Notes: generated from the sequence alone by a model not told the origin. Counted from the stretch's first letter, positions 1,656-61,287 are shown. The stretch is 64,000 bases of DNA from Malacoraja senta (GCA_038087875.1 JAXLNO010003747.1:186001-250000); one strand, 5' to 3'. Program-made: numbers and translations.

Positions 1656-2064
1656 CCCTAAGTATAGATATAGGGAAAGATACAGCAGCCTGAAAACCGT
1701 GACAACCAGATTCAAGAATAGCCTCTTCTCAGCAAACATCAGGCTCTTCAACATCACACAAAACTAACTTCAGCATCTATGATCATCTACGGACTATCTT
1801 TGAATGTACTATGAATTTAGTTTTTTGCACTATTATGATAGTCCAGTATTACAGTTATTAATTTATTGTTATATTGGTTGTTTTCTATTATCTCTGTGTT
1901 ATTGCAGTTACATGCAGGTGAAGCTGCAGCAAGTAAGAAGTTTGTTGTTCTATTGTTGATACATATGACAATTAAATGACTCTTACCTCACATTTGATTT
2001 AGGGTAAAGCTCACTCCATATTACCCCCATCATACACTCGGGAAAAGTACAAGGAACAAGTACA

Positions 2065-3118
2065 TGTTTAAGAAAGAACTGCAGATGCTGAAAAAATCCA
2101 AGGTAGACAAAAATGCTGGAGAAACTCAGCGGTGAGGCAGCATCTATGGAGCAAAGGAATAGGTGATGTTTTAGGTCGAGACCCTTCTTCAGACTGATAT
2201 GGGGGTGGGGGGCGGGAAGAAGAAAGGAAGTGGAGATAGTAGGCTGTGGGAGAGCTTCGAAGGGGAGGGGAAGGAGGGAGAAAGCAAGGACTACCGGAAA
2301 ATGGAGGTCAATGTTCATACCGCTGGGGTGTAAACTACCCAAGCGGAAAATGATATGCTGCTCCTCGAATTTGCAGAGGGTCTTACTCTGGCCGTGGAGG
2401 AGACCCAGGACAGAACGGTCCGATTCTGAATGGGAGGGGGAGTTGAAGTGCTGAGCCACCGGGAGATCAGGTTGGTTAATGCGGACTGAGCGGAGGTGTT
2501 GGGCGAAGCGATCGCCAAGCCTGCGCTTGGTCTCACCGATGTAGAGCAGTTGACACCTAGAGCAGCGGATGCAACAGATGAGGTTGGAGGAGGGGCAGGT
2601 GAACCTCTGCCTCACCTGGAAAGACTGCTTAGGTTCTTGGATGGAGTCAAGGGGGGAGATAAAGCGACAAGTGTAGCATTTCCTGCGGTTGCAAGGGAAA
2701 GTGCCAGGGGAGGGGAAGGTTAGGGAACGGGGCTTCTTCTCTTCGACTATAGATGAGGCTCTCACCAGGGTGTCTTCTATATCACGTTGCTCCGCTCTCA
2801 CTCCCCATCCCCCGACTAGTGACAAGTCCCCCTTGTCCTCACCTTCCACCCTACCAGCCGCCACATACAACAGATAATCCTCCGACATATTCGCCACCTC
2901 CAACTGGATCCCATCACTGGCCACATCTTCCCATCTTCTCCCCTTTCAGATTTCTGCAGAGACCGCTCCCTCTGAAACTCCCTGGTGAATTTGTCCCTTC
3001 CCACCCAAACCACCCCCTCCCCACCCAAACCACCCCCTCCCCTGGTACTTTCCCTTGCAACCGCAGGAAATGCTACACTTGTCGCTTTACCTCCCCCCTT
3101 GACTCCATCCAAGGACCT
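2065..3118 (-). mobile_element. Penelope-like element (GIY-YIG endonuclease region plus pLTR), with an inverted segment at about 2719-3118
   Basis: CYTC...QRFTCPSSNLICCIRCSRCQLLYIGETKRRLGDRF is the PLE GIY-YIG domain. Confidence 0.88.
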
Positions 3119-3944
3119 AGGCACGCCATGCTATCCAAACAGATTAGATATACCATACACAAATAGAATCAATTAAAAGGGGAATAATATCATGCAGAAT
3201 AACGATCTCAGCATTGTAGCGCATCAGTTCCAGTGAGAAAGACCAATGATCTCGGTGGATAGAGGTAAATCATACTTACCTACAGAAAAACTGTTCAGAA
3301 GCCAGATAACAGAGGGGAAGAAGCTGTCGCTGAGGCTGGTGGTACGTGCCTTCAATCTTCTGCACCTTCTGCCAGACGGGAGCCAAACCTATCCATGCCT
3401 TTCATAATTTTACATACTTCTATCAGGGCTCCCCTCAACTAATTGGTGCAGGGAACCAATGTAAGGACTCAGTTTTGGCAATGATACAAAAATAGATGAA
3501 ATGGCACGGTTTAATGAGGAAAGTATGATTTTACAACAGGGTATAGATAGCTTGAGTGATTAGTCAAAACGTGGCTAATGTGTTTAATGTGGGAAACTGT
3601 GAGGTCATGCTGAAGATACACAAAATGCTGGGGTAACTCAGCGGGACAGGCAGCATCTCTAGATAGAAGGAATGGGTGACGTTTCAGGTCGAGACCCATT
3701 TTCGGACTGCAGAACTCTCGTTGGAGAGAGGAGGAGAACTTCTTCAAAGTAGGCATACCTTGAGGAGATTTCTCAGTGGAGCAGCCAAATTGTGTAGGAA
3801 GGAACTGCACTGTGTAGGAAGGAAACTGTGAGGTCATGCTGAAGATAGACACAAAATGCTGGAGTAACTTAGCAGGACAAGCAGCATCTCTAGGTAGAAT
3901 TGGTGATGTTTCGAGTCATGCTCTTTGGCATAAGGAATCAAGTC

Positions 3945-4700
3945 ACCTTGCCCCAATCAGTATCAATGGTGCCAAAGTAGAAATGGTTGAGAGCTTCAAA
4001 TTCTTTCGTGTAAATATTACCAACGAACCTTGATGGACCAACCACATTGAAGGGACAGCCAAGAAGGCACACCAATGCCTCCATTTCCTCAGACGACTGA
4101 GGAAATTTGGTATGTGTCCAATGACTCTTACCAACTTCCATAGATGCACCATAGAAAGCATACTATCAGGTTACGTCACAGCTTGTTTTCAGAATAGCTT
4201 TGCCCAAGACCACAAGATATTGCAGAGAGGTGTGGATGTAGCACAGTCCATCACACAGACCAGACTGCCCATCATTGTCTCCATTTACACTTCCTGCCTC
4301 TTCAGGAAGACAGCCAACATAGTCAAAGACCTATCTCACACTAGTGATTCCTTTTTTCTCCACTTCCATCAGGCAGAAGATGCAGAGCTTAAAGGTGTAG
4401 AGCACCAGACACAGGAACAGCTTCTTCTACTCTGTTATCAGGCTTTTGAATGTTCCATGTGCTAGGACCCATTCCCAATTCTCCTTTACCTCAATATGGC
4501 CATTGGATTTTGTCTCTGGAACTGTTGTACAATAATGTTGAGAGCTATATTCTTCACTCTGTATCTTATCCTTCAGTCTGCCTATTGTACTTGTGTTTGG
4601 CTTGATAGTATTTATGTATACAACAGCAAACACAATGCTTTTCACCGTACCTTGGTACACATCACAATACCAAACCTAAAGCTAAACCTTAAATGGTGGA
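3945..4700 (+). mobile_element. L2/Rex-like LINE RT C-terminal fragment
   Basis: VESFKFFRVNIT...AKKAHQCLHFLRRLRK...FHRCTIESIL. Confidence 0.8.
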
Positions 4701-5431
4701 TTATTGTCTAAATGGAGAGAGACTGTAACTGAGTGAAGTTCAGATGGGATCTTGGTATTCAAGTGCATGCATCAAATTAAGTTAGTAGCAGGCCCAGTAA
4801 CCAATGGGAAAAATGCAGTCTTTACTGCAAAGGGGATGGAATTTAAGAACAGGGAAGTTATATTGGAATTATGCAGGATGATAGTGAGTCAATAACTGGA
4901 AAACCGCACACAGTTTAACATTAAAAAGAGTATAGGAGAATTGGATGCAGACCAGGTGAAATTCACCAAACTAAGTCAAGAGATGAAAAGGTTGTCCCAT
5001 CAAGAGCGGTAAACACTTTAGGTCTGCATTCCTTGGAGTGTAGAAAGTGATGAGTGACCTTATTCACACATGCAATATCTTAAGGGGCTTTTCATGATAG
5101 ATGTTGAGATGTTTCACTGGTGGGAAAGTCTAAAAACAATGGGAAACAACTACAGAATAAGGGACCAGTTGTTTAAAACTGAGGTACATAAAAATTACTT
5201 CTTTCTGAAGGGTGTGAATCGCTGGAATTCTGTGCCCAGAGGTGGTGGTAGCTAAGGTATTAGATATGCTTATGAACAGATAGAGAAATCTTTGAAAGAT
5301 TCAGGCAATTGAGGGTTTTGGGGTAATGGAACAGAGGAGGAGTAGTCCACTCCTGCTATTTTTACTTGTGTTGTTGGCGATTAACCTCATGAATAAAGTT
5401 AGAACTTGCAACCAACATTTCAATCAGAGGG

Positions 5432-5965
5432 GCCTCAGAGTGGCTCAGCAGTAGAGTTACTTCCTTGCAGTACCTGTGACTCAGGTTTGATCCTGACTAA
5501 GGGTGCTGTCTGTACCAACTTTGTATGTTCTCTCTGTGACTGCATGGGGATTCCCCTGGTGCTTCGGTTTCCTCCCAGTTCCAAAGACCTGCAGGTTTAT
5601 AGGTTAATTGGCATCTGTAAATTGTCCCATGTGTATAGGATAGACCTGTGTAGGCAGCACGGTGATGCAAAGGGGTGGCATGGAGGCGCAGTGGTAGAGT
5701 TGCTACCTTGCAGTGGCCGAGACCCAGGTTTGATCTTGACCATGGGTGCTGTATGTATGGATTTTCTACGTTCTCACCGTGACCTGTGTGGGTTTTCTCT
5801 GGGGGTTCCAGCTTCCTCCCAATCTCCAAAGACATGCAGGTTTGCAGGTTAATTGGCCCCAGATGTGTGTAGGATAGTGTTACTGTGGGGGGTACACTGG
5901 TCAGCACAGACTCAGTGGGTCTAAGGGCCTGTTTCAAGGCTGTACCTCTAAACCAAACTAATCTA
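5432..5965 (+). mobile_element. Two head-to-tail V-SINEs
   Basis: Heads at about 5432 and 5673, each with the V-core. Confidence 0.8.
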
Positions 5966-6829
5966 AGGAGCTGAGGCCAACTGAACAGTGATCATTTTAT
6001 TGAATGGTGGGACAAGTTTGGTGACTATTCTCAGGGGCTGATAGCCTACTACTGTTCTATTTCCTCCTGTTCTTGATAGTTCCCCTCATGGAGGCCAAGG
6101 TTTGAAACTGAGGAGAAAATTGTTTTATTTTTCTCCCAGATGATAACGAATGGTGGGAATTTTGAACTGCAGATTGTAGATTCATTACGTTACTGAGAAG
6201 GATGGATTTGTTTATTTGGGAAGTTGTGGGTTACTGGCTACAGACTCTTCTGGTCATGAGTAGATCAGTCATGACCTAATTGAGCTGCAGAACAGACTTT
6301 ACTCATGGCCAACAAATACTTCATTTTTCTTGTGATCTCTACAATTACCCACTACAATCATTGCACTCTTACTTGTTTATGATTGCACTCACGTATGGTG
6401 TATTATGACTGGATAGCATGCAAAACATGGTATTTCACCGTATTTTTGTACACATTACAATAATAAACTAAATTTTAGGGAGAAGGGAGCAGAATAATGT
6501 GGCCTCTATCAGTGGTTGAGTAATATCGACTAAAACGTTGGTTTGGACTAATTCTGCCAGTGGCTTGTGGGCCTATTCCTGCTTCTCCTTTCTTGTGTTC
6601 ATGTATTTGATGTATCTTGCTTACTGTGGTCACTGCTGTGAGTTATAACTTCAGTAACATAAGCGAATTAGTTCAGCACAATCCGAGCAAAATTAAAAGC
6701 ATTTTTTTAAATGCAGACTTAAATCTGGTGTAGTGAGGGAGAAACACAGACATCTTTGGGTTGATTGAAATGATTTTGGTTAAGAGCTGAAAATTAAAAT
6801 GAATAGAAATTAACATTTTGACATTAGAC

Positions 6830-7120
6830 TTCAGAGGTACATCACAGAAGCAGGCCCTTCGGCCCACCGAGTCCTCGCTAACTCCCCGTACAATAGTACT
6901 ATACCACGACAGGTGACAATTTACAATTTTACCAAAGCAAATTAACCTAAAAACCTGTACTTCTTAGAGACGTGGGAGGAAACCGGAGCACCCAGAGAAA
7001 AACAATGCAGTCACGCATGGAGATGCAGGGAGAATGTACAAACACCGTACAGACAGCACCGTTAGTCAGAATCGACCTGAGTCTCTGCTGCTATAGGCAG
7101 CAACTCTACCGTTGCAACAC
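6830..7120 (-). mobile_element. V-SINE
   Basis: gtgggaggaaaccggagcaccc core. Confidence 0.8.
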
Positions 7121-8649
7121 TGAGGATATCTTGAATTACAAAAGCAATATTTTGGGCTCATCACCAACCATACAAGCACCTGCATTCTTTATATGGTACA
7201 TTAATATGGAGTTTATTGCATTGAAACAGGCCCACAAGCCTGCCCTGTTGTTCAATACAATCCCTCAGTCATTCCTGATCTGGTTTGATTAGGATGCAAA
7301 TAAAAGCTTTTCGCTATATCACAATACAAATGACAATAATAAACCAATACCAATGCTATTGTGTAAGTTCTCCCCATATATGATAGATAGATCCTTGATA
7401 AATTTGTAGACACCATCGCCGTCTATATCCACCACCATTTGCTGCACAGTTTCAATGTCCAAACTAGCTTCCAATATAACTGTTTTACAGAATTCCATTT
7501 TGAGTTGAAAGATACAACATGGAAACAGGCCCTTCAGCCCACCATGCTGACCACCAGTCACCCCTTCACACTAGTTCAATGTTATCCCACTTTTTTGTCC
7601 ATTCCCCACATACGCTAGGGGAAATTTACAGATGTGAATTAACTGACAAACCCACACACCTGTGGAATGTGGGAGAAAACCAGAGCACCCGGGAAGAACC
7701 CAGGTGGTCACAGGAAGAAGGAACAAAATCTATACAGTAGCTAGACAAAAATGCTGGAGAAACTCAGGGGGTGAGGCAGCATCTATGGAGCGAAGGAATA
7801 GTTTGGGGTCAAGACCCTTCTTGGAGGGTTTCGACCGGAAACGTCGCCTATTCCTTTGCTCCATAAATGCTGCCTCACCCGCTGAGTTTCTCCAGCATTT
7901 TTGTCTACCTTCAATTTTTCCAGCATCTGCAGTTCTTTCTTAAAGAAAATCTATACAGACAATACCAGCGGTCAGGATCTAACGCTGGTCTCTGGTGCTG
8001 TGAGGCAGCAGCTCTACCTGCTGTGGACAGTGTTTGGTTTCCTCCTTTTTGTTCTGCATTGTAATGATTCAAGTCAGGATAGACGATTGGATTTATGGGT
8101 CTCCTGAATCATAACATAAGGAGCAGTTAGCAGCATAAGAATGGAGAGTTATCTGAAACGTAATTACAGTACCAGGCAACTACGCCCTGCCTTTCCATTC
8201 CATTTGCTATAGAGTGCGAAAAAACCAAAGTGCTGGAGTAACTCAGCAGGTCGGGCAACATCTCTGGAGGACATTGACAGGCGCTGTTTCAGATTGGGAC
8301 CCTACTTCAGACTGACAATAGTCACCTATCCTTTTTCTCCAAAGATGCTGCTCGACCCGTTGAGTTACTCCAGCGCTTTGTGTCTATCGTCACCTATCTA
8401 TGCCCTCCGGAGTTGCGACCTGACCTGTTGAGTTACACCAGCACTTTGTGTCTTTTGTTGTTGTAAATCGGCATCAGCAACTCCTCATGTCTCCATTACA
8501 GTCAATTGTTTCCTGCTGGTTCAATGACATCGCTCGACAACTGGTGTCGACCCGCCGTATTTTTATTCTGATTGCATGATGAGATCCTGCTTTGATGTTG
8601 GTGAAGTTTGGCTCAGTTGCTGCTGTTGATGCGAGAGGTTGTGCGTGAA

Positions 8650-8701
8650 ATGATTCTGTTCATCTTGTTGAGTTTCTTCCGCGTACAAGGGGCTCAAGCA
8701 G
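8650..8701 (+). CDS. Putative leader (signal peptide) exon 1 of the MHC class I-like gene, MILFILLSFFRVQGAQA+G, phase 1
   Basis: ATG at 8650 (in-frame alternative ATG at 8629 gives MREVVREM...), hydrophobic core, A-Q-A cleavage-type end and a strong donor G|GTAAGT at 8701/8702. It sits in a CpG-rich unique island. Phase 1 is what class I leader exons use. Assignment to the alpha1 exon 22.7 kb downstream is inference; I recognised only repeats and no other exon in between. Confidence 0.7.
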
Positions 8702-8984
8702 GTAAGTTAACGATACTCATTGTATTCGCTACTGGCTAAAAGCGTCTTGGCTTTAACTCAATCTTGACCGGAGGCGACTGAGTTTAAACAAGCGCGCAAT
8801 ACACATTCAGTCTGGTTCATGGTTCATGCGGACATTAAAAGGGTTTAATCTCCACTGTTTCAGTACAATCCAGACTGGAATTTCTGCTTTGATTTGCACA
8901 ATGCCCCGTTTCCTCTGTGGAAGAAGGAACTGCAGATATTGGTTTAAACTGATTTTAACTCGTGTAAAACAAACAGGAGCGAGG

Positions 8985-9900
8985 CACTCACTAGGGTTTC
9001 CTCGCTGCTCCGCTCTTGCTCTCCCTTCCCCCCCACATTTGTACCAAGGACAGAGTCCCCCTTGTCCTCACCTTCCACCCCATCAGCCGTCGCACAGCAT
9101 ATAATCCTCCATCATTTTTGCCACCTCCAACAGGATCCCAATACTGGCCACATCTTCCCATCTCCACCTCTTTCTGCTTTCCGTGGAGACCGTTCCCTCC
9201 AAAATTCCCTGGTCAACTCGTCCTTTTCCACCCAAACCACCCCCTCCCCAGGTACTTTCCCCTGCAACCGCAGGAGATGCAACACATGTCCCTTTCCCTC
9301 CCCTCTCGACTCCATCCAAGGACCCAAACAGTCTTTCGAGGTGAGGCAGAGGTTCACTTGCACCTTCTCCAACCTCATCTACTGTATCCGCAGTTGCAGG
9401 TGTCAACTTCTCTACTTCAGCGAGGCCAAGCACAGGCTCGGCAATCATTTCACTGAACTACTCCGCTCTGTCCATCTTAACCTACCTGATCTCCTGGTTG
9501 CTCAGCACTTCAACTTCCCCTCCCATTTCCAATCTGACCTTTCTGTCCTGGGCCTCCTCCATGGTCAGAGTGAGGCCCAGTGCAAATTGGAGGAACAGCA
9601 CCTCATATTTTGATTGGGTAGTTTACACCCCAGCTGTATGAACATTGACTTCTCTAACTTTAAATATCCCTTGCGTTCCCTCTCTATCCCCTCCCCCTTC
9701 CCAGTTCTCCCATCAGTCTTAATGTCTTCAACTACATTCTATCTTTGTCTCGTCAACTCCCCTGAAATCAGTCTGAAGAAGGGTCTTGACCCGATAGGTC
9801 ACCCATTCCTTCTCTCCAGAGATGCTGCCGGCCTGCTGAGTTACTCCAGCATTTTGTGTCTACCTTTGAGTTAAACCAGCATCTGCAGTTCTTTCTTACA
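8985..9900 (+). mobile_element. Penelope-like element 3' part (GIY-YIG plus pLTR)
   Basis: ORF 9062-9613 QRFTCTFSNLIYCIRSCRCQLLYFSEAK. Confidence 0.88.
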
Positions 9901-24834: not shown

Positions 24835-25884
24835 GTGTTAAAGAAGGAACTGCAGATGCTGGAAAATCGAAGGTACACAAAAATGCTGGAGAAACTCAGC
24901 GGGTGCAGCAGCATCTGTGGAGCGAAGGAAATAGGCAACGTTTCGGGCCGAAACCCTTCTTCAGACTGAAAGGGGGTGGGGAGAAGAAAGGAAAAAAGGA
25001 AAAAAGGCGGAGGAGGAGCCCGAGGGCTGGGGGAGGGGAGGAGACAACCAGAGGGCTGATGAAGGGGAGGGGACAGCAAGGGCTAGCAGAGTTGGGAGAA
25101 TTCAATGTTCAAGCCACCAGGATGTAGACTACCCAAGCGGAATATGAGGTGCATTTCCTCCAATTTACGGTGTTGCTCGCTGTGGCCATGGAGGAGACCC
25201 AGGACAGAGAGGTCATATACGGAATGGGAGGGGGAGTTGAAGTGCTGAGCCACCGGGAGGTCAAGTTGGTTATTGCGGACCGACCGGAGGTGTTCGGCGA
25301 AACGATCGCCAAGCCTCCGCTTGGTCTCACCGATGTAGATCAGCTGGCATCTAGAGCAGCGGATGCAATAGATGAGGTTGGAGGAGATGCAGGTGAACCT
25401 CTGTCGCACCTGGAACGACTGCTTGGGTCCTTGGATGGAGTGGAGGGGGGAGGTGAAGGGACAAGTGTTGCATCTCTTGCGGTTGCAAGGGAAAGTACCC
25501 GGGGAGGGGGTGGTACGGGAGGGAAGGGAAGAATTGACAAGGGAGATACGGAGGGAGCGGTCTTTGCGGAAGGCAGACATGGGAGGAGATGGGAAGATGT
25601 GGCGAGTGGTGGGGTCACGTTGGAGGTGGCCAAACTGACGGAGGATCACTTGTTGTATGTGACGGCTGGTGGGGTGAAAGGTGAGGACTAGGGGGACTCT
25701 GCCCTTGTTGTGAGTGGGGGGATGGGGAGAGAGAGCAGTGTTGCGGGGTATGGCAGAGACCCTGGTGCGAGCCTCATCTATGGTGGAGGAGGGGAACCCC
25801 CGTTCCCTGAAGAATGAGGACATTTCAGATGCCCTGGTGTGGAACGCCTCATCCTGGGAGCAGATGCGGCGTAGACGGAGGAAT
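24835..25884 (-). mobile_element. Penelope-like element 3' part with an intact 246-aa GIY-YIG-containing ORF
   Basis: ORF 25083-25823 with NLIYCIRCSRCQLIYIGETKRRLGDRFAEH. pLTR tail at 24835-24970. Confidence 0.92.
24934..24969 (-). ncRNA. Minimal hammerhead-ribozyme-like motif in a Penelope pLTR
   Basis: Minus strand reads ucagu-CUGAAGA-a-GGGUUUCGGCCC-GAAA-CGUU-gcc: catalytic core boxes, a stem II hairpin and palindromic AACGUU stem III. Stem I is only about 2 bp. Confidence 0.5.
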
Positions 25885-31396: not shown

Positions 31397-31655
31397 GGCC
31401 TCACACACTCCTATTACTACACCGTGAACCACCGGAGTACTCATCTACCAGAATATAGTGTCGTGGGTGTTCTGGACGGTTGTGAGATACAGTATTATGA
31501 CAAAAACATGGTCATTACAGTTCCAAGACAGAAATGGATGGCGGCTGCATTTGACAGGAATTACTGGGTAACAAATACGGTCTCTGAAACTGGTTTCCAT
31601 GGAATCATCAAAGGGCAAGTCGATGAATGGATGCGGCGGCAGAACGAAACAGCAA
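31397..31655 (+). pseudogene. MHC class I-like alpha1 exon with a frameshift near its 5' end
   Basis: Acceptor ttttctttgtgtctag| and donor A|GTTAGT. Reads (G)PHTL then, in a shifted frame, YYYTVNHRSTHLPEYSVVGVLDGCEIQYYDKN...PRQKWM...NYW...MRRQNETA. This matches class I alpha1 (HSLRYFYT, LD, PRxxW, YW, and the N86 glycan sequon NET). The exon is 259 nt, not a multiple of 3. Confidence 0.9.
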
Positions 31656-40925: not shown

Positions 40926-41959
40926 GGAGGGTGAATTTTATAAATGAAGTTAAAACCATTAGATCTGTTGAACTTGTTAACAGACTATTGACTTGGTAAC
41001 CTGTTTCCAAATGTTTGTGTTGGCTTCAGAATACTATTAACAATTCCAGCAACAGTAGCTTCTGCAGAGGTCATTTAGCAAACTCAAGCTGATTAAGAAT
41101 TATTTAAGGTCGACAATGTCTCATGAACGTCTTGTGGATTTGGCCAGGCTAAGTATTAAAAGTCAGTTTTATTCATCACATACACCAAAAGGTGCAGTGA
41201 TGTGAATTTGCCAGCAGTGATACACGTAAAAAGAACACACAATACACAATAAAATTGAACACAAACATCCACTACAGCATTCTTCACTGTGGTGGAAGGC
41301 AACAAGTTTCAGCAAGTCCTCCTCCTTTGTTCACCCGTGTTCGGGGCCATAACCCCTCCGTAGTCGCAACTAGGGACGGCCCGATGTACAAGGCCCTCTC
41401 GTTGGGATGATCCAAACTCCGATGTTGGGACGGACAAACCTCGGCGACTCGGCACTTTCCTACTGGAGACCGCAGCTGCAGGATGTTATAGGCCGCAGGC
41501 CAGCAGTTCTGCGGTTAAATATAAAAGGATGTTTCAATGTGTATTCTTTCTCCTTATCTGTATTGTAGCATAAACAAAGATGTTCAAAACAAAGGTAGAT
41601 AAAATGCTGGAGAAACTCAACGGGTGAGGCAGCATCTATAGAGTGAAGGAAAACAAATGTGCTTTCTGATCCTTTTATTTTATTTATACTTATTTATATT
41701 TATCATGGCGGGAGTATAGGGACATAAGGCCTCAAATGCAGAAAATGAACAGAGCGCCCCATTCCACCCCTCTCTCATCTTCCATACCCCTTTTTGCCGT
41801 GCAGGCTACAGCTCATGGCATAAAACTGTAGCATAGTGGATAAAAACAGGATGACTATTGGAGAAGGGAAGGGGGCCCAATAGATACTTTGTACCCACTG
41901 ATAAAATTCCTCTGAGGCCCTGCGTATACACGCACAAACAGTGTGTGTTGTGAACCATG

Positions 41960-44562
41960 TCTTCCAAGATGCGCATGTATCGTGAGGCATTTCCCAAGTT
42001 GGGCTTCACAAGCATTGTTCAAAATCCGTGGTCAAGCTGCAATGTGTTCTCTGTGCCAAGGTGTTGAGTCACGAGAGCATGAAGCCCAGCAAATTGAAGA
42101 TCCATTTGGAGTCTTGTCACAGCAACCTGGCGGGGAAGAGCGTGGACTGTTCAAACGAAAAGAAGCCGTACTCAAGGGTTCTCGCATCTATTCAACGGGT
42201 CACTGCACTCATCAAAATGAAGCAGCATTGGAGGCTTCATACCGGATTGCTTATCGAATCACACAGACTAAGAAACCTCAACAGCATCGGTGAAGAGCTT
42301 ATCAAGCCATGCCTTCTCGAAGCAGCAAAGTTGGTGCTGGGGGAAGAGCAGTCAAACAAGTTCAGGCAGATTTCCCTTTTGAATGACACAGTCAAAAGTT
42401 GAATCTCGGAAATGAGTAATGATATTCTGCTGCAAGTAGTGAGGGCTGTGACGAGCAGTCCAGTGTATTCACTGCAACTGGACAAGTCAACAGATGTTGC
42501 CTCATGTTCCCAACTACTAGTCTACATTTGTTACCTCGATGGAGTAGCCATGACGGAGGAGTACCTGTTCTCGGAGCCATTGGCTACTACCACTCGGGGA
42601 GAAGATGTGTTCAGAATGCTGGAAGCCTTCCTCATCAAACATGAGCTTGGCTGGGAACGCCTTGTCGGGATGTGTACAGATGGGGCACCTTCCATGGTCG
42701 GTTGCAGATCCAGTTTCCAAGCCTTCGTGAAGGATGTCGCTCCCCATAGAAACATAGAAACATAGAAACATAGAAAGTAGGTGCGAGAGCAGACCACCAG
42801 GTCCATCGAGCCCGCACCGCCATTCGCTCATGGCTGAACACCAAACAAACACCTCTACCCACAAACAGTAGACACAAGACACAGAACACAAGACACTACC
42901 CTCCCCTTTATAGCGCTATCACCCCTCTCCACCCCAAGAACCGAGTGATCTCCTGGGGGAGGCAAAAAAACGGATAAAAACCCAGGTCCAATTCGGGAAA
43001 AAAATCCGGGAAATTCCTCTCTGACCCCAATCCAGGCGATCGACACTTGTCCAGGAGATCACTCAGGTCTTACTATACTAACCCTACCTAGGTCCATATC
43101 CCTGCCCTCTCCCCGTAGCCCCTTATCCCCTTGGCAGCTAAAAAACCATCTATTTTAGACTTAAATATATTTAATGTTTCTGCTTCCACTGCTCCCTGGG
43201 GCAGTGAATTCCATAAATTAACCACCCTCTGGGTGAAGAAGTTCTTCCTCATCTCAGTTTTAAAAGAGCCCCCCCTTATTCTGCAACTATGTCCCCTAGT
43301 TCTAGTTTCCCCGATCATTGGGAACATCCTCGGTGCATCCACCCGATCAAGGCCCCTCACGATCTTATATGTTTCAATGAGATCGCCTCTCATTCTTCTA
43401 AACTCCAAAGAGTAGAGTTCCAGCCTACTTAACCTTTCCTCATATGTCAATCCCCTCATTGCAGGAATTAATCTTGTAAACCTTCGCTGCACTGCCTCCA
43501 GGGCCAGTACATCTTTTCTTAAGTATGGACCCCAGAACTGTACACAGTATTCCAAATGTGGTCTCACTAATACTGTGTACAGTACCATGTCTCCTTCACC
43601 CACTGCATGATACATCGCCATGCTTTAGCAATGAAGACTCTCCCTCTTGGTCTTCGAGAAGTGCTTTCAGATGTGGTGAAGATTGTGAACCACATCCGAG
43701 AGCGCAACAAACTCAAGAATCTTCAAGCGATGTGTGAAGAAATGGGCGCCGATTTCACTATTCTGTTATTCCACACAGAAGTGAGCTGGCTTTTGCGTGG
43801 TAAAGTTCTCAACCATGTGATTCAACGTTGAGAGGAAATAGCGCTGTTCTTGGAGAGAAGGTGTACTGAGAAGGAGAATCAGCTTCATGAAAAGATGCAG
43901 GTTGAACTGTTCGTGATGAAGGTTGCTTACTTGGCTGACTTCTTCGCCGAGGTGAATTCCTTGAACCTGTCACTTCAAGGAAACCTCCCAATGGCAATGT
44001 GGCAGCATTCAGGAGGAACCTTTACCAGAGAAGAGTCCAGGACGGTGACTCGACTATCTTCCCTGAAATGACAACTCTCCTGGATGCTATGCCTGATGCT
44101 GAATGCCACTTCCACGAGGAGATCTCAACCCACCTTCTGGCAATTAGTGAAGCCATCGAACGTTATTTCCCCAGACTGGACGACTGCTCTCATGATGAGT
44201 GGATCATCCGACCCTTTTCCGTTGAAGACGGTGGCATCAGTGATACTGACGTGACTGCGAAGGTTGAATTTTACCGAATTCGTGGAGATGCGCAACTCAA
44301 GAGTGACTTCATGGAACAAGGGCTCGCCACGTTTTGGCTGGAAGTGAAGGACTGTCCTGTTCTTTCGAAGAGGGCCTTGACCCTATTGGTCCAGTCCCCC
44401 TCAACCTCTCACTGTGAGGGTGGATTTTCAACTATGGTAACTCTGAAAACGAAGGTACGCAATAGGCTTGTGATCGACACTGACATGAGATGCTGCCTGT
44501 CGAGCATTCGTCCATGTTTTGATTGCCTGATGACTGCGAAGCAATTTCAGCCATCCCATTGA
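41960..44562 (+). pseudogene. Buster/ZBED5-like hAT transposase, frameshifted and interrupted by a CR1
   Basis: BED finger (QCVLCAKVLSHESMKPSKLKIHLESCH), LDKSTD, CTDGA, HCMIHRHALA, and CEGGFS...KTKVRNRL dimerisation end. It is split over several ORFs. Confidence 0.9.
42746..43581 (-). mobile_element. 5'-truncated CR1 LINE inserted in the hAT transposase
   Basis: RT C-terminus [19 protein letters not shown]...[10 protein letters not shown] and an (ATGTTTCT)n tail at about 42746-42775. Confidence 0.9.
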
Positions 44563-45584
44563 CTGAGCATTGGCTGACATGTTTTAATAAATCGGGCTGT
44601 TTTTTTTCAAATTTTGTTTCAGAGGTCACGGTACTGATCAAGAATGCTCGATGGGGTCGTGGGGCCAAAAAGGTTAAGAACCACTGCTCTAAAGCTTAAA
44701 ACTAAACGGGCTAATAAAGGCTACAAAGTGGCTTTAGTGAGTCGGATTACAGAAAATCCCACATCTTTTTCAAGGTTTCATGGTTAGTTTATTGTCACAT
44801 ATACCAATTAAGGTACATTGAAATGCAGACTACCATACACCATACAAAAAAAAAGCAACAAGACACACAATAACGTAAAAGTTAACATAAACATCCACAA
44901 CAGAGGAGCCCGCACGTTCCTCACTGTGATAGAAGGCAATAAAGTCTAATCTCCTTCCTCTTTATCTCCCACGGTCTGGGCAGTCAAACAATCTGCAGTC
45001 GGTGGTCGAAACCCCCGTTGGGGAATCGAAACTCCCACATCGGAGCGGTCGAAACTCCTGCGGCTTGGAGGTCCCGGATGTCGGTCTCGACCGAGGACCG
45101 CAGGCTCCGCGATGTTAAAGTCTTGCAGGCTCTCACAGTTGGAGCTCTAAAGTCGATCCCCGACAGGGATTGCGAGCTCCATGATGGTAAGTCCACAGGC
45201 TCCTGCGATGGATCTCCTGGTCGATCTCCAGCAAAGGCCGCCATTCCTCAATGTTAGGCCGCATTGTGGACGGAGATACGATACAGAAAATATCGCATCA
45301 ACGTCGAGGTAAGAGATTAGGAAAAGTTTCCCACAACTCCCCCACCCCCCCCCCCCGCCCAAAAAACAAGCTTAAGAACACTGAAGAATATACATTTAAC
45401 ACGTACAAAATGGACACAAAGAAGGAAGGGACAGACATACTGTTGGCGAGGCAACCATTGCAGCAAAAGGTGGATTGCTTAAGGATATAGAAGGGAATAT
45501 GTGCTTGGAGTTTGTGGATATAGGCGAGGTTTGGTTTCACCAAGGAAGACATGTAGAATAGTAAGGACCATTAATAGTAAGTAC

Positions 45585-46385
45585 ATCATAAAATCCTCCA
45601 ACATTTTTGCCACCTCCAACGGGATCCCACTACTGGTCACATCTTCCCATCTCCACCCCTTTCTGCTTTCCGCAGAGACCGTTCCCTCCGAAACTCCCTG
45701 GTCAACTCGTCCCTTCACACCCAAACCACCCGCTCCCCGGATACTTTCCCCTGCAACCGCAGGAGATGCAACACCTGCCCCTTTACGTCCCCCCTCGACT
45801 CTGTCCAAGGACCTAAAGTCATTCCAGGTGAGGCAGAAGTTCACTTGCACCTCTTCCAACCTCATCTACTGTATCCGCTGTTTCAGTTGTCAACTTCTCT
45901 ACATCAGTGAGACCAAGCGCAGGCTCGGCGATCGTTTTGCTGAACACTTCCCCTCAGTCCGTCTTACCCTACCCGATCTCCCGGTGGCTCAGCACTTCAA
46001 CTCCCCCTCCCATTCCCAATCTGACCTTTCTGTCCTGGGCCTCCTCCATTGTCAGAGTGAGGCCCAGCCCAAATTGGAGGAACAGCACCTCATATTTCGC
46101 TTGGGTAGTCTATACTCCAGCAGTATGAACATTGACTTCTCTAACTTTCGATAGCCCTTGATTTCTCTCTCCATCCCCTCCCCCTTCCCAATTCTGCCAC
46201 CAGTCTTACTGTCTCCGCCGACATTCTATCTTTGTCCCTCCCCTGACATCAGTCTGAAGAAGGGTCTCGACCCAAAACGATGCCCATTCCTTCTCTCCAG
46301 GGAAGCTGCCTGACCCGCTGAGTTACACCAGCATTTAGTGTCTCTACGATTTTAACATCTGCAGCATCTGCAGTTCTTTCTTACA
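45585..46385 (+). mobile_element. Penelope-like 3' fragment
   Basis: QKFTCTSSNLIYCIRCFSCQLLYISETKRRLGDRF plus pLTR. Confidence 0.88.
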
Positions 46386-46965: not shown

Positions 46966-47109
46966 TAGTTCAGTGACAAGTAGAGTTCTGCAGGGATCTG
47001 TGCTGTGACCCTTGCTACTTGTGACATATATAAATGACTTGGACCCTGGTGTTCAGAAATTACCCAGTCATAACAATTAATGAAATAATGATTTTTATTT
47101 TTATTTCAG

Positions 47110-47385
47110 ATTATCACTACGTTCAAGGACAGTTTGGTTGTGAGGTGGACGATCACAGTCCCACTGTAGGGATATTGAAGTTGGCTTTTGATGGAAGATA
47201 TGCATTTAGTTTTGATAAGGACAAACTAAAGTGGACGGTGCATGATCCAATAGCTGAGCCCTTCAAAGAGAAATGGGACAAGAATGAAAAAATGAACCGT
47301 TATTTCAAGAGCTTGTTAGAACATGACTGTGTGGATCTATGGCTTACATACTATGCAATTGGAAAGACATTCCTGACCAGAAAAG
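47110..47385 (+). CDS. MHC class I-like alpha2 exon (92 codons, phase 1/phase 1)
   Basis: Acceptor ttttatttcag| and donor G|GTGAGT. Length 276 nt is the canonical alpha2 size. Translation YHYVQGQFGCEV...AFDGR...KWTV...FKEKW...LLEHDCVDLWLTYYAIGKTFLTRK has H93, Q96, C101, D119, W133, K146, W147, C164 and Y171 (HLA numbering, aligned by eye). Confidence 0.94.
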
Positions 47386-48029
47386 GTGAGTTCAGAACAA
47401 AGGATGTTGTTTTGCAATGGTAGGCAATGAGTAATATTATCTCTGACCCAATCATGACAGAGGGAAAGGTCATTCGGCCCATTGATTCTATGCTAGTCTT
47501 CTACGCAATGTCGACAAACTGTTCCACAGCTCTCTCTCACAACTTGCACTCAGCTCCCTTGGATTCTCCTTGCATTCAGCTCCACGACGGATAATTTGCA
47601 ATGTCCAACTAACTCACTGGCACGTCTTTGGTATATTGGACAAATCTGGAGCACATGGAGGAAGCCAACTGAGTCATAAGTGATGGCTGCAGCATTAGAA
47701 CATTCGGCCCATCAAGTCGACTTCGCCAGTCAATCATGGCTGATCTATCTCTCCCTCCTAACCCCATTCTCCTGCCTTCTCCCCATAACCCCTGACCTGC
47801 ATACTAATCAAGAATTAAAAATATCCATTGACGGACTCCACAGCCTTCTGTGGCAAATAATTCCACAGAATCACCATCCTCTGACAAAATAAATTCCTCC
47901 TCATCTCTTTCCTAAAGGAATGTCCTTTAATATTGAGACTATGACCTCTCGTCGTAGACTCTCCCACCATTGGAGACATCCTCTCCACATCCACATCTAT
48001 CCAAGCCTTTCACTATTTGTTTAAAAAAA

Positions 48030-49390
48030 TATATATATTTTTATTAGAAGCATGTGCATATCATAATACAAACATTTCTTATATATCAATCCTACTTTGC
48101 TAATAGGTGGGAATCCAGCTATCAAAATAATAGTGGTCCTCCTTTATCAATTGTATATTAAATCTGCTTCTATTTAGTTTTGTTTTATAGATAGAAAGTG
48201 AGAAATTTAAAAAAAGGCATGATAAAGAAGAATGGAATAATTTACCAATAATACAACTTTGGAGATAGGTCCGTAGGTTATAAAGCATAACTATTCATCT
48301 AATCCTGAGCTTGGATTTCAGTCAGATTCCCATGCTGAACCAACTTTTCCTTTCAAAAAATCAATAAATAGAGACCTTATTCTATTAAATAATTCAAGTT
48401 TGTCAATTAAGACAAGTCTAGTTCTTTCCAAATGTAAGGTCTCTGACATTTCCATAATCCACATTTTGATTGTGGGGGTTATAGGACCTTTCCAAAATTT
48501 TAATATTAATTTTTTCCCAATTATTATACTATAATCAAGAAAGTTTCTTTGGTTTATTGTAAGTCTTAGGCTTTGTTCTGACATTCCTAATATTATTAGT
48601 TTTGAGTCGGGATCCAATTGGGTATTGACTACTTCAGAAATTATTCTGAAAATGTCCTTCCAGAAATTTTTGATTTTTATACAATTTACAAAGGTATGAG
48701 TTAAGTTAGCCTCTAAATGCTGGCATTTATCACAAATAGGAGAGATATGTGGGAAGATTCTATTTAATTTTGTTTAAGAATAATGTAATCTATGTAATAC
48801 TTTAAATTGTATTAAGGCATGTCTGGCATTTAACGAGCATTGATGTATATATTGTAGACTTTCGTCCCAAATATCTTTCGTTATGGGTTGGCCTAATTCA
48901 TTTTCCCATGTGTGTCTATATAAATCCGTCGGCGAGACCTCACTATCTAAGAGGGTATTATAAATATGAGATATTAAATTTTCTGTATTAGGATGTTTAT
49001 TCAAACATTCATCAAGGATTTCTGGTTCCCTAGTTCTGTAATCTTGTGTATTTGATTTAATGTAATCTTTAAGTTGTAAATATCTGAAAAAGTTATTTGA
49101 GTGTAGTCCGTAAATCTGTTGTAACTCCTGAAATGAAAGAAAAGTGCCTTTCCTATAAAGATGACCAATCTTTTTAATTCCATAATTTTTCCATTGTGTA
49201 AAGCCTTTATCCAACATGGAGGGTTTGAATAAAGGGTTGTTTATAATGGGGAGAGAGTGATAAATTATCCAATTTTAAAGTCTTTTTTAATTGTTTCCAA
49301 ATTCGTATACCACTATATATTATAGGATTTTCACTATAGCTTTTTTAATGCAATTTTGTGGGAGAAAACATAATCAAACCAATTTCAAAA
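48030..49390 (-). mobile_element. L1/Tx1-like LINE 3' fragment
   Basis: ORFs WKNYGIKKIGHLY...HALIQFKVLHRLHYS and IIIGKKLILKFWK. Confidence 0.85.
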
Positions 49391-49974
49391 GGCAAACAGA
49401 CTTTCACTATTTTGTATGATTCAATGAGGTCCCCCCTTTATTCTTCTAAACTCCAGCAAGTACAGGCCCACTGCCATCAAATGGTCATCATATGTTAACC
49501 CATTCATTCCTGGGATCATTCTTGTACACCTCCTCTGGACCCTCTCTAGAGCCAGCACATCCTTCCTCAGATATGGTGCCCAAAATTGCTCACAATGCTC
49601 CAAATGTGGTTTGACTGGCGCCTTATAGAACCTCAGCATTACATCCCTGTTTGACAGGGAGAAAGTGTAATTGATGTCTTTCATAGTAGTTAACCATGGA
49701 TTTTATTGACCACAGTTGACAGCCCCTAATGGGATTGCATGTCTATCACACATTTCAAAAGAGCACAGCGTTAAGCTTCGAAGGGCAAAATTTACACGAG
49801 ATGTGCAGGTCAAGTGTTTTTTTGCACAGAGAGAGCTTGATGCCTAGAATGCGCTACCAGGAGTGGTGGTAGAGGAGGACATGATAATGGTGCTTAAGAA
49901 GGTTTTGGACAGGCTCGTGGGTATGCAGGGAATACAAGGATATGGATCACATGCAGGCAGTGGAGATTAGTTTT

Positions 49975-50265
49975 GGTTTAGTTTAGAGATAGAGTATGGA
50001 AACAGGAACTTTGGGCCACTGAGTCCACACGGACCAGCAATTGTCCATTCACTATTTCTGTCCTTCAAGCTAGGGACAATTTACAGAAGCAAATTAACCT
50101 ACAAACCTGCACGTCTTTTGTATTTGGGAGGAAACCGGAGCCCCCAGAGAAAACCCACAGGGTGACAGAGAGAACGTACAAACTCCATCCAGACAGCACT
50201 CTAGTCAGGATCGAACCCGGGTCTCTAATGCTGTAAGACAGCCACTCTATCACAGTGCCGCTGTG
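49975..50265 (-). mobile_element. V-SINE
   Basis: Consensus match by eye. Confidence 0.8.
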
Positions 50266-50284
50266 TTGCCTTAGTTTAACTTGG

Positions 50285-51240
50285 TATCCTGTTGCTCTTA
50301 CTTCAACTGTTGCTCTTACTTCAACTGTGATGAAGTGTTTTGAGAGGCTGGTCCTGGCCCACATTAAATCCTCACTCCCATCCACCCTGGATCAGCATCA
50401 GTTTGCATACAGAGCTAACAGGTCAACAGAGGACGCCATCAACATAGCTCTACATTCTGCACTGACTCACCTGGAGCGCCCCAGCTCATATGTGAGGATG
50501 TTGTTTGTAGATTTTAGTTCTGCATTCAATACCATCATCCCCAGCAGAATGGTGGACAAACTGGGTGTAAATGCCAACACATGCAGATAGATCAAGGACT
50601 TATTAACAGATCGCCCACCGACTGTCAGGATGGGGTCCAATCACTCCCCAGTCCTGACGCTCAGCACAGGAGCACCACAAGGTTGTGTGCTGAGTCCTAT
50701 TCTCTAAACAATATACACCCATGACTGCACACCAACACACAGCACAAACCGGATCATTAAGTTTGCAGATGACACGACTGTGGTGGGGCTGATAAATAAC
50801 AACGACGAGTCTGCCTACAGAGATGAAGTCCAAAAACTGACTGTCTGGTGCATTAACAATAACCTGGTACTCAACTCAACCAAAACAAAAGAACTGGTTA
50901 TTGACTGCAGGAGGAGGAGAGAGGAACCTGCTCCTCTCTAGATCAAAGGAGACATGGTGGAGAGAGTCACTGGCTTTAAGTTCCTGGGTACATACATCTC
51001 CCAGGACCTCACATGGACAGTGAACACCATCACTCTTGTAAAGAAGTCACAGCAGCGGCTATATTTCCTGAGGTCTTGCTGGTAATATGAGAGTTAATGT
51101 GTTTTTGTACTTTTAAATCTTTTTATCCTGTCTTTTATTGTATACAACTGAAGGAGATGCACTGAAATTTCGTTGTACAGTTGCTGTGCAATGACAATAA
51201 AACGTATTGTATTCGATTCTGCTGATTTGCATTTGTTGTT
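50285..51240 (+). mobile_element. L2/Rex-Babar-like LINE RT fragment
   Basis: VALTSTVMKCFERLV...QFAYRANRSTEDAI...FVDFSSAFNTI, GAPQGCVLSP and KFADDTTVVG. Confidence 0.88.
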
Positions 51241-52996
51241 GTATTTATAGGTGTATCTATCATTGCCATTTCCTGCTTGCTGTGTAAACTTCATCTGAAT
51301 AAGGAAATGAATTGCAACCTATATATATATAACCATTAACTAATCTGAATTTGACTAATTTATTATTTTGACATAAAATGGCATAACCTCTGTACTCTCT
51401 TACACAACTAGATATCTTTTAACTGTATCATTAAGTCTGGCGCTGATCCCAGCAATCACTTGAAAGAGATTGTGGCCATCTTTAAGGGTGCAGCCCCTTT
51501 CAAGATGTTCTTTGGGAAAGAGACTTTTAAAATTGGTTTCTTTTTTTTTTCCATTCCAATGAAGAGTCCTTGACCTGAAAAGTCAATTTTGTCTCACTCT
51601 CTGATCACCTTAAACTTTCTTTGGTTTAAAGAGATTCAGCATAATATACTGAGAAAGCACCTTGACTGATGGCGTAATTGTATTGTGTGGCAATTCCAAC
51701 ACAGGAGGCTGCAGAGGGTGGTGACCTCATCCCGATCTATCAGTGGAACAACACATCTCACCATAGAAAGTATCTATATGAATCATCTCAAGTATGTGCC
51801 ATCTGTCATCGTCCATGTCCACTTCTTACTGCTTCCGACAGGCTGAAGGCTCACACAACCAGCTTCAAACCAGCTACTTTCCCACAACTTTCAGGTGTTT
51901 GAACCAACCTGCATAACCCTAATCCTGACTTGGCAACGGAACATTTCGGACCACTTCTTGCACCACCATTAATTCGTTTTTCTCATTGTGAACACTGATG
52001 TCCTGCTTTTCATATATTTTTTATTATTGTTCTTGCCTTTCACCTCTTGAGGAGGAAGTCAGAAATGTTCTCATAGAAGTTCAAGACACAGTTTTACTCC
52101 GTGCTGTTCATGATGTCAATGGCCAAACAAAATAACTTTTACTGAATACTTTAATTTTTATAAAAATAAGTGCAAAGTTTATTTCGTCTGATGAAGGGTC
52201 TGATGACTTGTTGCACACGGAACAGGAGTGCGTGTAGAATGAATGGGTGTGGCATTAGATAAGGAGGACAGCGAAACTGGGAGGAGACGACTTCTCAATC
52301 AATGTTTGAAGCATTCATTCGTGCTAAATGTGACCAGGTAATATCAACAGCAATCTGTCTCCTGCAGATAATGTCAAAGCTTCTCGACATCAATGAAAAG
52401 AAAATAATTGCAAATCGCAGGTAATTCAACGCCGTCGCGAACTCGTTTATGTTATTATGTTTTAGAATCAAATAAACTGTTGGTGCCTGAGAAAATTGCC
52501 TCGCGATAAAAGCAGATACAAGGAACCACAGATGCTGGTTGACAAAGAAAAAGACACGAAGTGCTGGAGTAACTCAGCGGGTCAGGCAGGCAGCATCTCT
52601 GGAGAACTTGGATAGGCGATGAATCTGGTCGGGACCCTTCTACAGACTGAGTGTGGCGTGGAGGTTTTTTTTTAGGGGTAGATATTAGTATCTTTGGTAG
52701 ATATTGGTGCCCCTAGAAACGGTATATCCGACCAACCATCACCACAACCTCTCCAACCACCACAATCAGTGTGAAGAAGGGACTCGACGACAAACTCCAT
52801 CTTATCGATGTTCTCCAGAGATGCCGCCAGATAACTTTGAACTCTCGGACGTAAACTGTTCGATGGAGGGCTGATTCATAGAACTATTATTTCATGTGTT
52901 TCCGACAAATATATTTAAAGCACGGGGCAGATCATAGATTGACTTTCACGATGAATGGCGTAACGCGAAATCAATATCACAGGTTGATCAATAAAT

Positions 52997-53010
52997 CCAA
53001 TGACGGGCGG
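52997..53010 (+). promoter_or_regulatory. Candidate NXPE promoter elements: CCAAT box followed by a GC box (GGGCGG)
   Basis: ccaatgacgggcgg in a CpG-enriched unique stretch about 350 bp upstream of the NXPE ATG. Motif match only. Confidence 0.35.
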
Positions 53011-53356
53011 AGGATGCGTGCGGATGTTTTACCCGGGCTCTTCATGGGTTCAGGGACCAGAATATTAGATCATATTGACAATGGAACCAAGTGCAAAACT
53101 TGAGAGCTTCAGCAGAAATCATGTAACGCGACGGGTGACCAGTTTCTAACAGAACACTGTACTTAACGCAGTGAAGAGACAATTACATACGAAACGTAAC
53201 TAACTTCATACCAAAGATACTCCTCCAGTCCTTTGCCACAGTTTTACTCGCACTGTCATTTTGTAAAGTTAACGTGTGAAGCCACGGGCGGAAACTCTCG
53301 AGCTCTTAATTGTTTTTTTAGTTGTAGATGTACACGGGAGTGCGGGGGCCTCCAAC

Positions 53357-53458
53357 ATGGACAAACAAGCTACAAAAATAAACACTAATGTCGGACGATT
53401 CCTGATTGTGGCGTTGCTGGCACTGGCATTGATGTTTCTAAACTTGCGGCATATAAAG
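53357..53458 (+). CDS. NXPE3: NXPE3-like first coding exon (signal anchor) MDKQATKINTNVGRFLIVALLALALMFLNLRHIK; exon acceptor at 53327/53328
   Basis: Good Kozak context ccaacATGG, a ~16-residue hydrophobic stretch, and donor AAG|GTGAGT (phase 0) that matches the phase-0 acceptor at 60500. An N-terminal hydrophobic anchor is typical of NXPE proteins. Confidence 0.78.
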
Positions 53459-53564
53459 GTGAGTAGAAAGATAAAACTAAAGGGCCCGTCCCACCAGCAT
53501 GCGTCTGCACGCGTCTAGCGTGACCTAACGTGGTGACTTGAGGCGTACGGCCGCGCGGGGCCGG

Positions 53565-54365
53565 TCCCACTTCCAACCGCGGGGCCGTGTGGAGTTGTGC
53601 GGGGCCGGTCCCACTACCAACCGCGGGGCCGTGTGGAGTTGTGCGGGGCCGGTCCCACTTCCAACCGCGGGGCCGTGTGGAGTTGTGCGGGGCCGGTCCC
53701 ACTTCCAACCGCGGGGCCGTGTGGAGTTGTGCGGGGCCGGTCCCACTTCCAACCGCGGGGCCGTGTGGAGTTGTGCGGGGCCGTCCCACTTCCAACCGCG
53801 GGGTTGTGCGGGGCCGTGTGGAGTTGTGCGGGGCCGTGTGGAGTTGTGCGGGGCCGTGTGGAGTTGTGCGGGGCCGCGTGGAGTTGTGCGGGGCTGGTCC
53901 CACTTCCAACCGCGGGGCCGTGTGGAGTTGTGCGGGGCCGCGTGGAGTTGTGCGGGGCCGCGTGGAGTTGTGCGGGGCCGCGTGGAGTTGTGCGGGGCCG
54001 CGTAGAGTTGTGCGGGGCCGCGTGGAGTTGTGCAGTGCGGGGCTGCGTGGAGTTGTGCAGTGCGGGGCCGCGTGGAGTTGTGCGGGGCCGTGTGGAGTTG
54101 TGCGGGGCCGCGTGGAGTTGTGCGGGGCTGGTCCCACTTCCAACCGCGGGGCCGTGTGGAGTTGTGCGGGGCCGCGTGGAGTTGTGCGGGGCCGCGTGGA
54201 GTTGTGCGGGGCCGCGTGGAGTTGTGCGGGGCCGCGTAGAGTTGTGCGGGGCCGCGTGGAGTTGTGCAGTGCGGGGCCGCGTGGAGTTGTGCAGTGCGGG
54301 GCCGCGTGGAGTTGTGCGGGGCCGCGTGGAGTTGTGCGGGGCCGCATGGAGTTGTGCGGGGCCGG
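53565..54365. repeat. GC-rich minisatellite of 20-bp (ggggccgcgtggagttgtgc) and 24-bp (ggggccggtcccacttccaaccgc) units
   Basis: Visible tandem periodicity; it explains the repetitive ORFs. Confidence 0.95.
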
Positions 54366-54485
54366 TCTGGTCCCGACATCAAACTCACCAATCAGCTGGG
54401 CAGGAGGCGGGCCGACTGAATCTGGACGTAGCACGGCGTCGGGCTGTGATGTCAAGACGCTGCGTTCGGCGTCAAGACGCTGCGT

Positions 54486-56054: not shown

Positions 56055-56265
56055 TGTGGCGTCGAGGCGGTGCTTGTGGCGTCGAGGCGGTGCTTGTGGC
56101 GTCGAGGCGGTGCTTGTGGCGTCGAGGCGGTGCTTGTGGCGTCATGGTGGTGCGTGCGGCGTTGAGGCGGTGCGTGTGGCGTCGAGGCGGTGCTTGTGGG
56201 GTCGAGGCGGTGCTTGTGGCGTCGTGGTGGTGCGTGCGGCGTTGAGGCGGTGCGTGCGGCCTCAA
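56055..56265. repeat. 20-bp minisatellite (gtggcgtcgaggcggtgctt)n
   Basis: About 10 imperfect tandem copies. Confidence 0.92.
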
Positions 56266-60499: not shown

Positions 60500-61287
60500 T
60501 TCCCGCAATTTTCAATTTCCGGAGCAAAGTCAGTGTGGATCAGATACCCAGCTCGGAAGAATCATTCCACACTACAGCAGGAAGTAAAAATGCCAAAGAC
60601 TGATTGGATCCACAAGCTGGTGAAGTATGGCTATCAGAATCATAGCTTCACCCTTGAAGAAAGAACAGAGGGTACAGTACTGATGAAAATGATTGAATGG
60701 CCAATGCCTCCCGATCCCAGTGTGCCCTTTAGGAAAAGCACCGACCCATTGCATACTTGCTTTATCATTTTAAATTCTGAGAAGACTTTCCACGTTGGAG
60801 ATCAATTGCAAGTGATGCTGCGAATGTTTGACTTTGATGGAAATCCAAAACAATATGGAGGTGGCTATCTGCAAGCGCGGATTCACACCCCAGAGTTAAA
60901 GGCTGGTTCAGCAGGAACAGTTATAGATAACCAAAATGGATATTATTACATTAATTTTACTTTATCCTGGCCAGGAAAAGTCCAAGTGTCAGTTTCCCTA
61001 ATTCATCCCAGTGAAGGGATCAAAGTACTAAAACGGCTGCGTGAAGAACGACCAGATCGAATTTATATGAAAAGCACTTTCAAGGCTGGAGCTATTTCAA
61101 AGACTACTGTTTGCAATGTGTTTTTAACTCCAACTAAACCACTATGTAACTTTACTGATCTCAGGACAGGTGAGCCTTGGTTTTGTTACAAACCAGAAAA
61201 TCTTCCGTGTTCTACTCGAATCAATCATGCTGGACGTGGATATATAAGAGATGTTTTAATCGGAGAAGAGAGGCTATTTATCCAAAG
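60500..61287 (+). CDS. NXPE3: NXPE family (neurexophilin/PC-esterase) large exon, NXPE3-like
   Basis: Acceptor tttccatag| and donor AG|GTATTC (phase 2). The translation contains FHVGDQLQV...KQYGGGYLQARIH...GYYYINFTLSWPGKVQVSVSLIHPSEG...PDR...CNV...CNFTDLRTGEPWFCYKP..LPCS, which I recognise as collinear with vertebrate NXPE3. Orthology versus paralogy is not resolved. Confidence 0.93.

Follow-up and report, generated by a model that had tools for sequence, protein, structure and literature searches.

A truncated, frameshifted MHC class I copy, probably a pseudogene, next to an NXPE3-like gene in the skate Malacoraja senta

A 64,000-nucleotide stretch of the Malacoraja senta genome (GCA_038087875.1 JAXLNO010003747.1:186001-250000; hereafter the window, whose coordinates are used throughout unless another locus is named) carries the leader, alpha1 and alpha2 exons of a major histocompatibility complex (MHC) class I gene, followed on the same strand by an NXPE3-like gene. 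A preliminary description, made from the sequence alone, had remarked that no alpha3 (Ig C1) exon lies between alpha2 and NXPE, and offered three readings: an alpha1-alpha2-only gene, a truncated relic, or a gene with a very long intron that contains NXPE. We conclude that the window copy, which is joined to an unrelated NXPE gene, is in all likelihood a truncated, frameshifted pseudogene of a known non-classical MHC class I lineage. The lineage itself is, as judged by sequence comparison, conserved in sharks and rays. The case is decided by a frameshift in alpha1 together with a breakpoint downstream of alpha2, and not by the length of the gap that follows alpha2.

In the course of events that we propose, the partial copy would run from a 5′ flank of at least 6 kb through the leader, alpha1 and alpha2 into the start of intron 3. 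It would end at about 50,287, at a junction between a short interspersed element (SINE) and a long interspersed element (LINE), and the unrelated NXPE3-like gene would start about 3 kb further on, on the same strand. With no downstream exons, and with an independent 2-bp deletion in alpha1, such a copy would yield no class I protein and would be a decaying pseudogene fragment.

The alpha3, transmembrane (TM) and tail exons are missing from the window, whose end falls inside the NXPE gene; the searches for them covered all 64 kb on either strand. A six-frame scan of stop-free stretches of at least 45 aa gave 0 matches to the C1-set/alpha3 motif. When five full-length relatives, including Leucoraja XP_055521884, were used as tblastn queries, only the leader (8,629-8,730), alpha1 (31,412-31,654) and alpha2 (47,106-47,384) were recovered, and the best match to residues past alpha2 had E=2.8. 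A hidden Markov model (HMM) was built from 72 alpha3 domains and run against the six-frame translation with stops masked; its best i-Evalue in the window was 2 (score -2.3), and as a positive control it detects the alpha3 of the intact Amblyraja radiata gene with 92.9 bits. The search that detects both the TM exon (E=2e-16) and the tail exon (E=1e-5) at the intact A. radiata locus found neither of them in the window (best E=1.2). Motif scan, tblastn and HMM thus all agree with the preliminary description that no alpha3 exon lies in 47,386-53,327, and the wider tBLASTn and HMM search that it had proposed, run over the rest of the window, found no C1-set exon there either. Its view of the alpha2-to-NXPE interval as transposon debris was likewise borne out, with a fragment of the reverse-transcriptase domain RVT_1 at 50,255-50,590 and the remaining open reading frames (ORFs) of the interval matching no Pfam family. 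We infer that the missing exons do not lie further downstream.

Our reference is the intact A. radiata gene XP_032898133 (P0154, 341 aa), whose locus on chromosome CM021389.1 we call L001. In L001 coordinates the leader starts from 10,001, alpha1 occupies 41,881-42,141, alpha2 53,464-53,739 and alpha3 74,155-74,436, with the TM exon at about 80,766-80,861 and the tail exon at about 87,701-87,745. The introns measure 31.8, 11.3 and 20.4 kb, the third of these being intron 3, between alpha2 and alpha3. The window extends 16.6 kb past alpha2, and its alpha2-to-NXPE interval is 5.9 kb, against 20.4 kb for the intact intron 3. Because the intact intron is this long, the lack of alpha3 within 5.9 kb carries little weight alone.

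The exons that are present can be delimited precisely. The leader (signal peptide) exon at 8,629-8,701 (+), found by tblastn and by DNA alignment, has an intact ATG, an open frame and a phase-1 donor (G|GTAAGT); it is 71% identical to the Leucoraja leader by tblastn, and its DNA aligns with the A. radiata leader exon with the donor conserved. Alpha1 at 31,397-31,655 (+) has 259 nt, against 261 in the intact gene, and both of its splice sites are conserved. It matches the Leucoraja protein at 86% by tblastn, in a shifted frame, and taken alone it scores weakly against Pfam MHC_I (PF00129; 19.2 bits, cutoff 28.3). Alpha2 at 47,110-47,385 (+) has 276 nt, an open frame, both cysteines, a phase-1 acceptor and a phase-1 donor (G|GTGAGT), and reaches 50.1 bits against the same family. 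When 1.8 billion representative proteins were searched with it by phmmer, it proved 92% identical to the Leucoraja erinacea class I protein (90% by tblastn), and its translation differs from the A. radiata protein at 5 residues; a search for short proteins of 50-160 aa that include alpha2 came back empty. Within alpha2, G at 47,148, CT at 47,343-47,344 and T at 47,371 distinguish this copy from the intact gene. At every exon boundary, from the leader donor through both sites of alpha1 to both sites of alpha2, the splice sites are identical to those of the intact gene, the phase-1 introns are kept, and the introns of the copy measure 22.7 kb (leader to alpha1) and 15.5 kb (alpha1 to alpha2). 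By its predicted antigen-binding superdomain of alpha1 and alpha2 the copy is a member of class I.

Collinearity with the intact locus extends well beyond the exons. From 2,284 to about 50,287, a span of about 48 kb, the window follows L001 1,422-65,560 at 85-93% identity, with transposon insertions on both sides. The upstream flank at 2,284-8,628 (+), which appears to have been co-duplicated with the class I gene, is collinear with the intact A. radiata 5′ flank, and its portion 2,284-8,444 aligns to L001 1,422-7,408 as single-copy sequence with 89-92% identity. Downstream of alpha2, a remnant of class I intron 3 at 47,386-50,287 (+) is collinear with L001 intron 3 except where an L1-like element has inserted, at about 48,020-49,400. 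Its single-copy blocks are 47,439-48,019 (L001 59,755-60,353, 87.5% identity), 49,402-49,461 (L001 60,342-60,400) and 49,459-50,284 (L001 64,754-65,560, 90.3%).

Homology to the intact class I locus then stops at the 3′ end of a SINE. We place this breakpoint at 50,285-50,290; the alignment to L001 is near-perfect to about 50,287 and the sequences are unrelated beyond. A 5′-truncated LINE reverse-transcriptase fragment follows directly (50,291-50,941, +; the RVT_1 match has E=1.3e-7), and an 18-nt tandem duplication lies at 50,289-50,328. The remaining 8.6 kb of L001 intron 3 includes about 3.7 kb that is single-copy among the loci compared (65.7-67.2, 68.7-70.0 and 73.2-74.15 kb), and neither these stretches nor alpha3 have a counterpart in the last 13.7 kb of the window. 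The junction would have arisen by partial segmental duplication or by a repeat-mediated deletion.

Aligned with the intact A. radiata gene, alpha1 proves to have lost 2 bp after 31,409, at a site that is not a homopolymer. Because of this deletion the leader frame runs through 20 codons of alpha1 and then meets a TAG at 31,456-31,458, the class I homology going on in another frame, so that no uninterrupted frame leads from the leader into the domains. Since the leader frame stops here, and since alpha3, TM and tail exons to which it could splice are missing, no class I protein is to be expected from the copy.

Several observations weigh against calling the copy a pseudogene fragment. Alpha2 and all four splice sites are intact, the frameshift is seen in one assembly, intron 3 is already very long in the intact gene, and the window ends inside NXPE. 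Moreover, the pairwise ratio of nonsynonymous to synonymous substitution rates (dN/dS) against the intact gene is 0.37, based on 22 substitutions, a value that averages a functional branch and a relic branch and cannot date the loss of function. The copy has therefore not been free of constraint throughout its history, or else it died recently.

Run searches with alpha2 and with NXPE gave no run recorded as RNA. Four runs from other skate samples, compared over the region 47,000-52,999, consist of contigs that cover introns, which marks them as DNA contigs. The single-copy parts of 47.0-53.0 kb are present in these samples at about 98-99% identity, intron flanks included, and one contig of run X5 spans alpha2 and both intron flanks with 5 mismatches in 449 nt. 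An extra 2-bp deletion in alpha2 at 47,259, absent from the window, is found in the X5 contig, in one contig of run X8 and in part of the depth of run X4; position 47,148 is A in all four runs, against G in the window. The contigs with the alpha2 deletion would fit the neutral decay of this relic, provided that they are orthologous to it and do not come from another copy. Together the deletion and the difference at 47,148 suggest that the relic exists either in several copies or as several alleles, which were disabled independently.

The closest relatives of the copy are complete heavy chains, with alpha1, alpha2 and alpha3 domains, a TM segment and a YQNI-bearing tail. The best-matching L. 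erinacea protein shares its 90% cluster with the A. radiata reference protein. The C1-set domain (PF07654) is found in 16 of 17 relatives, the exception being a read-through isoform, predicted by computation, from a gene that itself has alpha3; intact relatives with C1-set come from Leucoraja, Rhinoraja, Pristis, Mobula, Hemitrygon, Heptranchias, Heterodontus, Pristiophorus, Stegostoma, Cetorhinus, Scyliorhinus and Mustelus. The intact relatives, class I-like genes that occur in low copy number across sharks and rays, encode a tyrosine sorting tail. Compared with the intact skate genes (A. radiata XP_032898133; L. erinacea LOC129716032, represented by P0001 and P0156; Rhinoraja longicauda P0210), the window copy has 90-95% protein identity over leader, alpha1 and alpha2, the same splice sites and intron phases, and collinear flank and introns; it differs in lacking the alpha3, TM and YQNI tail exons that follow alpha2 in the intact genes, and in having the 2-bp frameshift in alpha1. 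A solved three-domain structure, 9ch4, deposited as 'Ig-like domain-containing protein', is a close relative, matching the A. radiata protein with E=9e-118 and the window alpha2 with E=6.5e-35. CD1-like elasmobranch class I lineages named UFA and UGA have been reported in a review (PMC12562908) and are also mentioned in PMC10751288.

Gene models of the L. erinacea relative call for a separate remark. Several NCBI models of LOC129716032 (P0152, P0153, P0155 and P0209; 574-663 aa) run on from the intact class I gene into a GPR139-like receptor that lies downstream, and one such read-through isoform (isoform X4) has MHC_I and 7tm_1 domains but no C1-set. Such computed fusion models may mislead searches for domain architecture.

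Other explanations of the locus have to be set against a pseudogene fragment. The class I gene could be complete, with a very long intron 3 in which the NXPE3-like gene lies entire, in the same orientation, and with alpha3, TM and tail beyond the window; the huge introns of this lineage, in A. radiata and in the window alike, would accommodate this, and the window stops 16.6 kb after alpha2, within NXPE. We nevertheless consider it unlikely. The intron would have to span an entire multi-exon gene, and nesting is the less parsimonious assumption given that the intact A. radiata class I gene has no NXPE in any intron (none was found in its introns or 10-kb flanks). Furthermore, intron-3 collinearity is lost at 50,287 and is not regained over the 13.7 kb that follow, and alpha1 is frameshifted whatever follows downstream. 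It is very unlikely that the junction is instead an assembly artefact, in which unrelated regions were joined at a repeat at about 50.29 kb. The break does fall exactly at a SINE/LINE boundary, a typical site of mis-joins, and 50,285 is bridged by none of the listed DNA contigs from the four runs; however, DNA contigs from independent runs cover single-copy stretches on both sides of it at 98-99% identity, and a mis-join would leave the alpha1 frameshift unexplained.

A working product without alpha3 is very improbable. Read-through at the alpha2 donor could give a secreted alpha1-alpha2 chain, and a splice from that donor to the acceptor at 53,321 could give an MHC-I(alpha1-alpha2)-NXPE chimera; the intact alpha2 with its splice sites and the dN/dS of 0.37 would suit either. 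For the chimera, joining the phase-1 alpha2 donor to 53,322 keeps the reading frame of the NXPE ATG, and the 12 intervening codons are free of stops (read directly); yet such a fit arises by chance in about 1 case in 5, NXPE has its own conserved initiator, among relatives of 188-597 aa no protein combines MHC_I with neurexophilin, and the window copy has lost its frame in alpha1 already. As to the secreted chain, the stop that ends read-through of the alpha2 donor is indeed at 47,421-47,423, where the preliminary description had put it, but the secreted alpha1-alpha2 protein proposed there finds no support in our results: the leader ORF stops within alpha1, a weak cryptic donor would be needed, and alpha3 is kept by every intact relative. 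What would be the tail is ordinary, non-conserved intron sequence; in the intact gene the same read-through stops after 3 codons. The related DNA contigs with a second frameshift in alpha2 also argue against a working product. We give hardly any credence to a broader version, in which the front half of a class I gene plus NXPE is a recurrent multi-copy unit of skates whose copies with intact alpha1 encode a chimera or an alpha3-less chain, the window copy having been recently killed. Among the readings offered at the outset, the truncated relic is thus favoured by the frameshift, by the end of intron-3 homology and by the separate NXPE3-like gene, and the functional alpha1-alpha2-only gene is disfavoured by the broken ORF and by relatives that keep alpha3.

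Class I-like molecules without alpha3 do exist. The mammalian ULBP/RAET1 and EPCR genes are intact, have a glycosylphosphatidylinositol (GPI) signal or a TM segment after alpha2, and their orthologues also lack alpha3. Like them, the window locus has alpha1 and alpha2 exons only; unlike them, it has a broken ORF, nothing coding after alpha2, and orthologues and paralogues that all keep alpha3. We considered an alpha3-less gene of the ULBP/EPCR type and rejected it, there being no intact ORF from signal peptide through alpha1 and alpha2, a tail that is non-conserved intron, and relatives with alpha3.

The NXPE3-like gene is independent of the class I copy and has a start codon and a signal anchor of its own. 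Its first coding exon at 53,322-53,458 (+) has an ATG at 53,357, a 34-codon signal anchor and a donor after 53,458; it is preceded by a strong acceptor-like site, a T-rich tract followed by AG at 53,320-53,321 (the candidate acceptor), and the N-terminus resembles that of a Mobula NXPE3-like protein (P0166). Exon 2 at 60,500-61,287 (+), whose splice sites were read, encodes the neurexophilin-like domain (PF06312, 123.6 bits) and is 89% identical to A. radiata NXPE3-like. The gene accordingly has the arrangement that defines the NXPE family, a neurexophilin-like domain after an N-terminal signal anchor, its C-terminal exons lying beyond the window.

Over its NXPE portion the window aligns collinearly, with 92-94% DNA identity, to an A. 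radiata NXPE3-like locus on CM021380.1 (L002), which was compared as far as about 8 kb upstream of exon 2, the furthest aligned point being window 57,264. This closest A. radiata NXPE copy is thus on CM021380.1, as against CM021389.1 for the intact class I gene. No class I relic was found within 10 kb upstream of a Leucoraja NXPE3-like paralogue (L003), a gene that is 69% identical and not an orthologue. Close behind the signal-anchor exon, intron 1 of the window's NXPE gene contains GC-rich minisatellites at 53,555-54,414 and 56,055-56,260, with 20-nt and 44-nt units in up to 27 copies and 85-98% matches, which create long spurious ORFs on either strand.

For an ordinary truncated, frameshifted class I copy the significance beyond annotation is small. 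There is a caution in it all the same: because class I introns reach 20-30 kb in these genomes, an exon missing within a few kb is no evidence of a new domain architecture, and the real breakpoints are located by comparison with an intact paralogue. The segmental duplication junction may help to reconstruct the spread of class I and NXPE copies in skates.

Some mobile elements of the class I region are recorded here in their own right. An ORF run at 42,028-44,562 (+), in class I intron 2, resembles a decayed DNA-transposon transposase (hAT-like by eye), and three ORFs taken from it matched no Pfam family. Also in intron 2 of the copy, the 548 nt at 42,761-43,308 are 97% identical to L001 71,603-72,150, which lies in intron 3 of the intact gene; this stretch is probably a young transposon common to both genomes, because its identity is far above the 85-93% background and its position is non-collinear. 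Four copies of another element lie in the class I flank and introns, at 1,983-2,924 (-), 9,062-9,613 (+), 25,083-25,823 (-) and 45,501-46,154 (+). In its ORF a Cys-rich motif precedes a GIY-YIG-like one, and the element looks Penelope-like; the copy at 25,083-25,823, the sole copy scanned, gave a weak match to Pfam GIY-YIG (E=1.6e-4).

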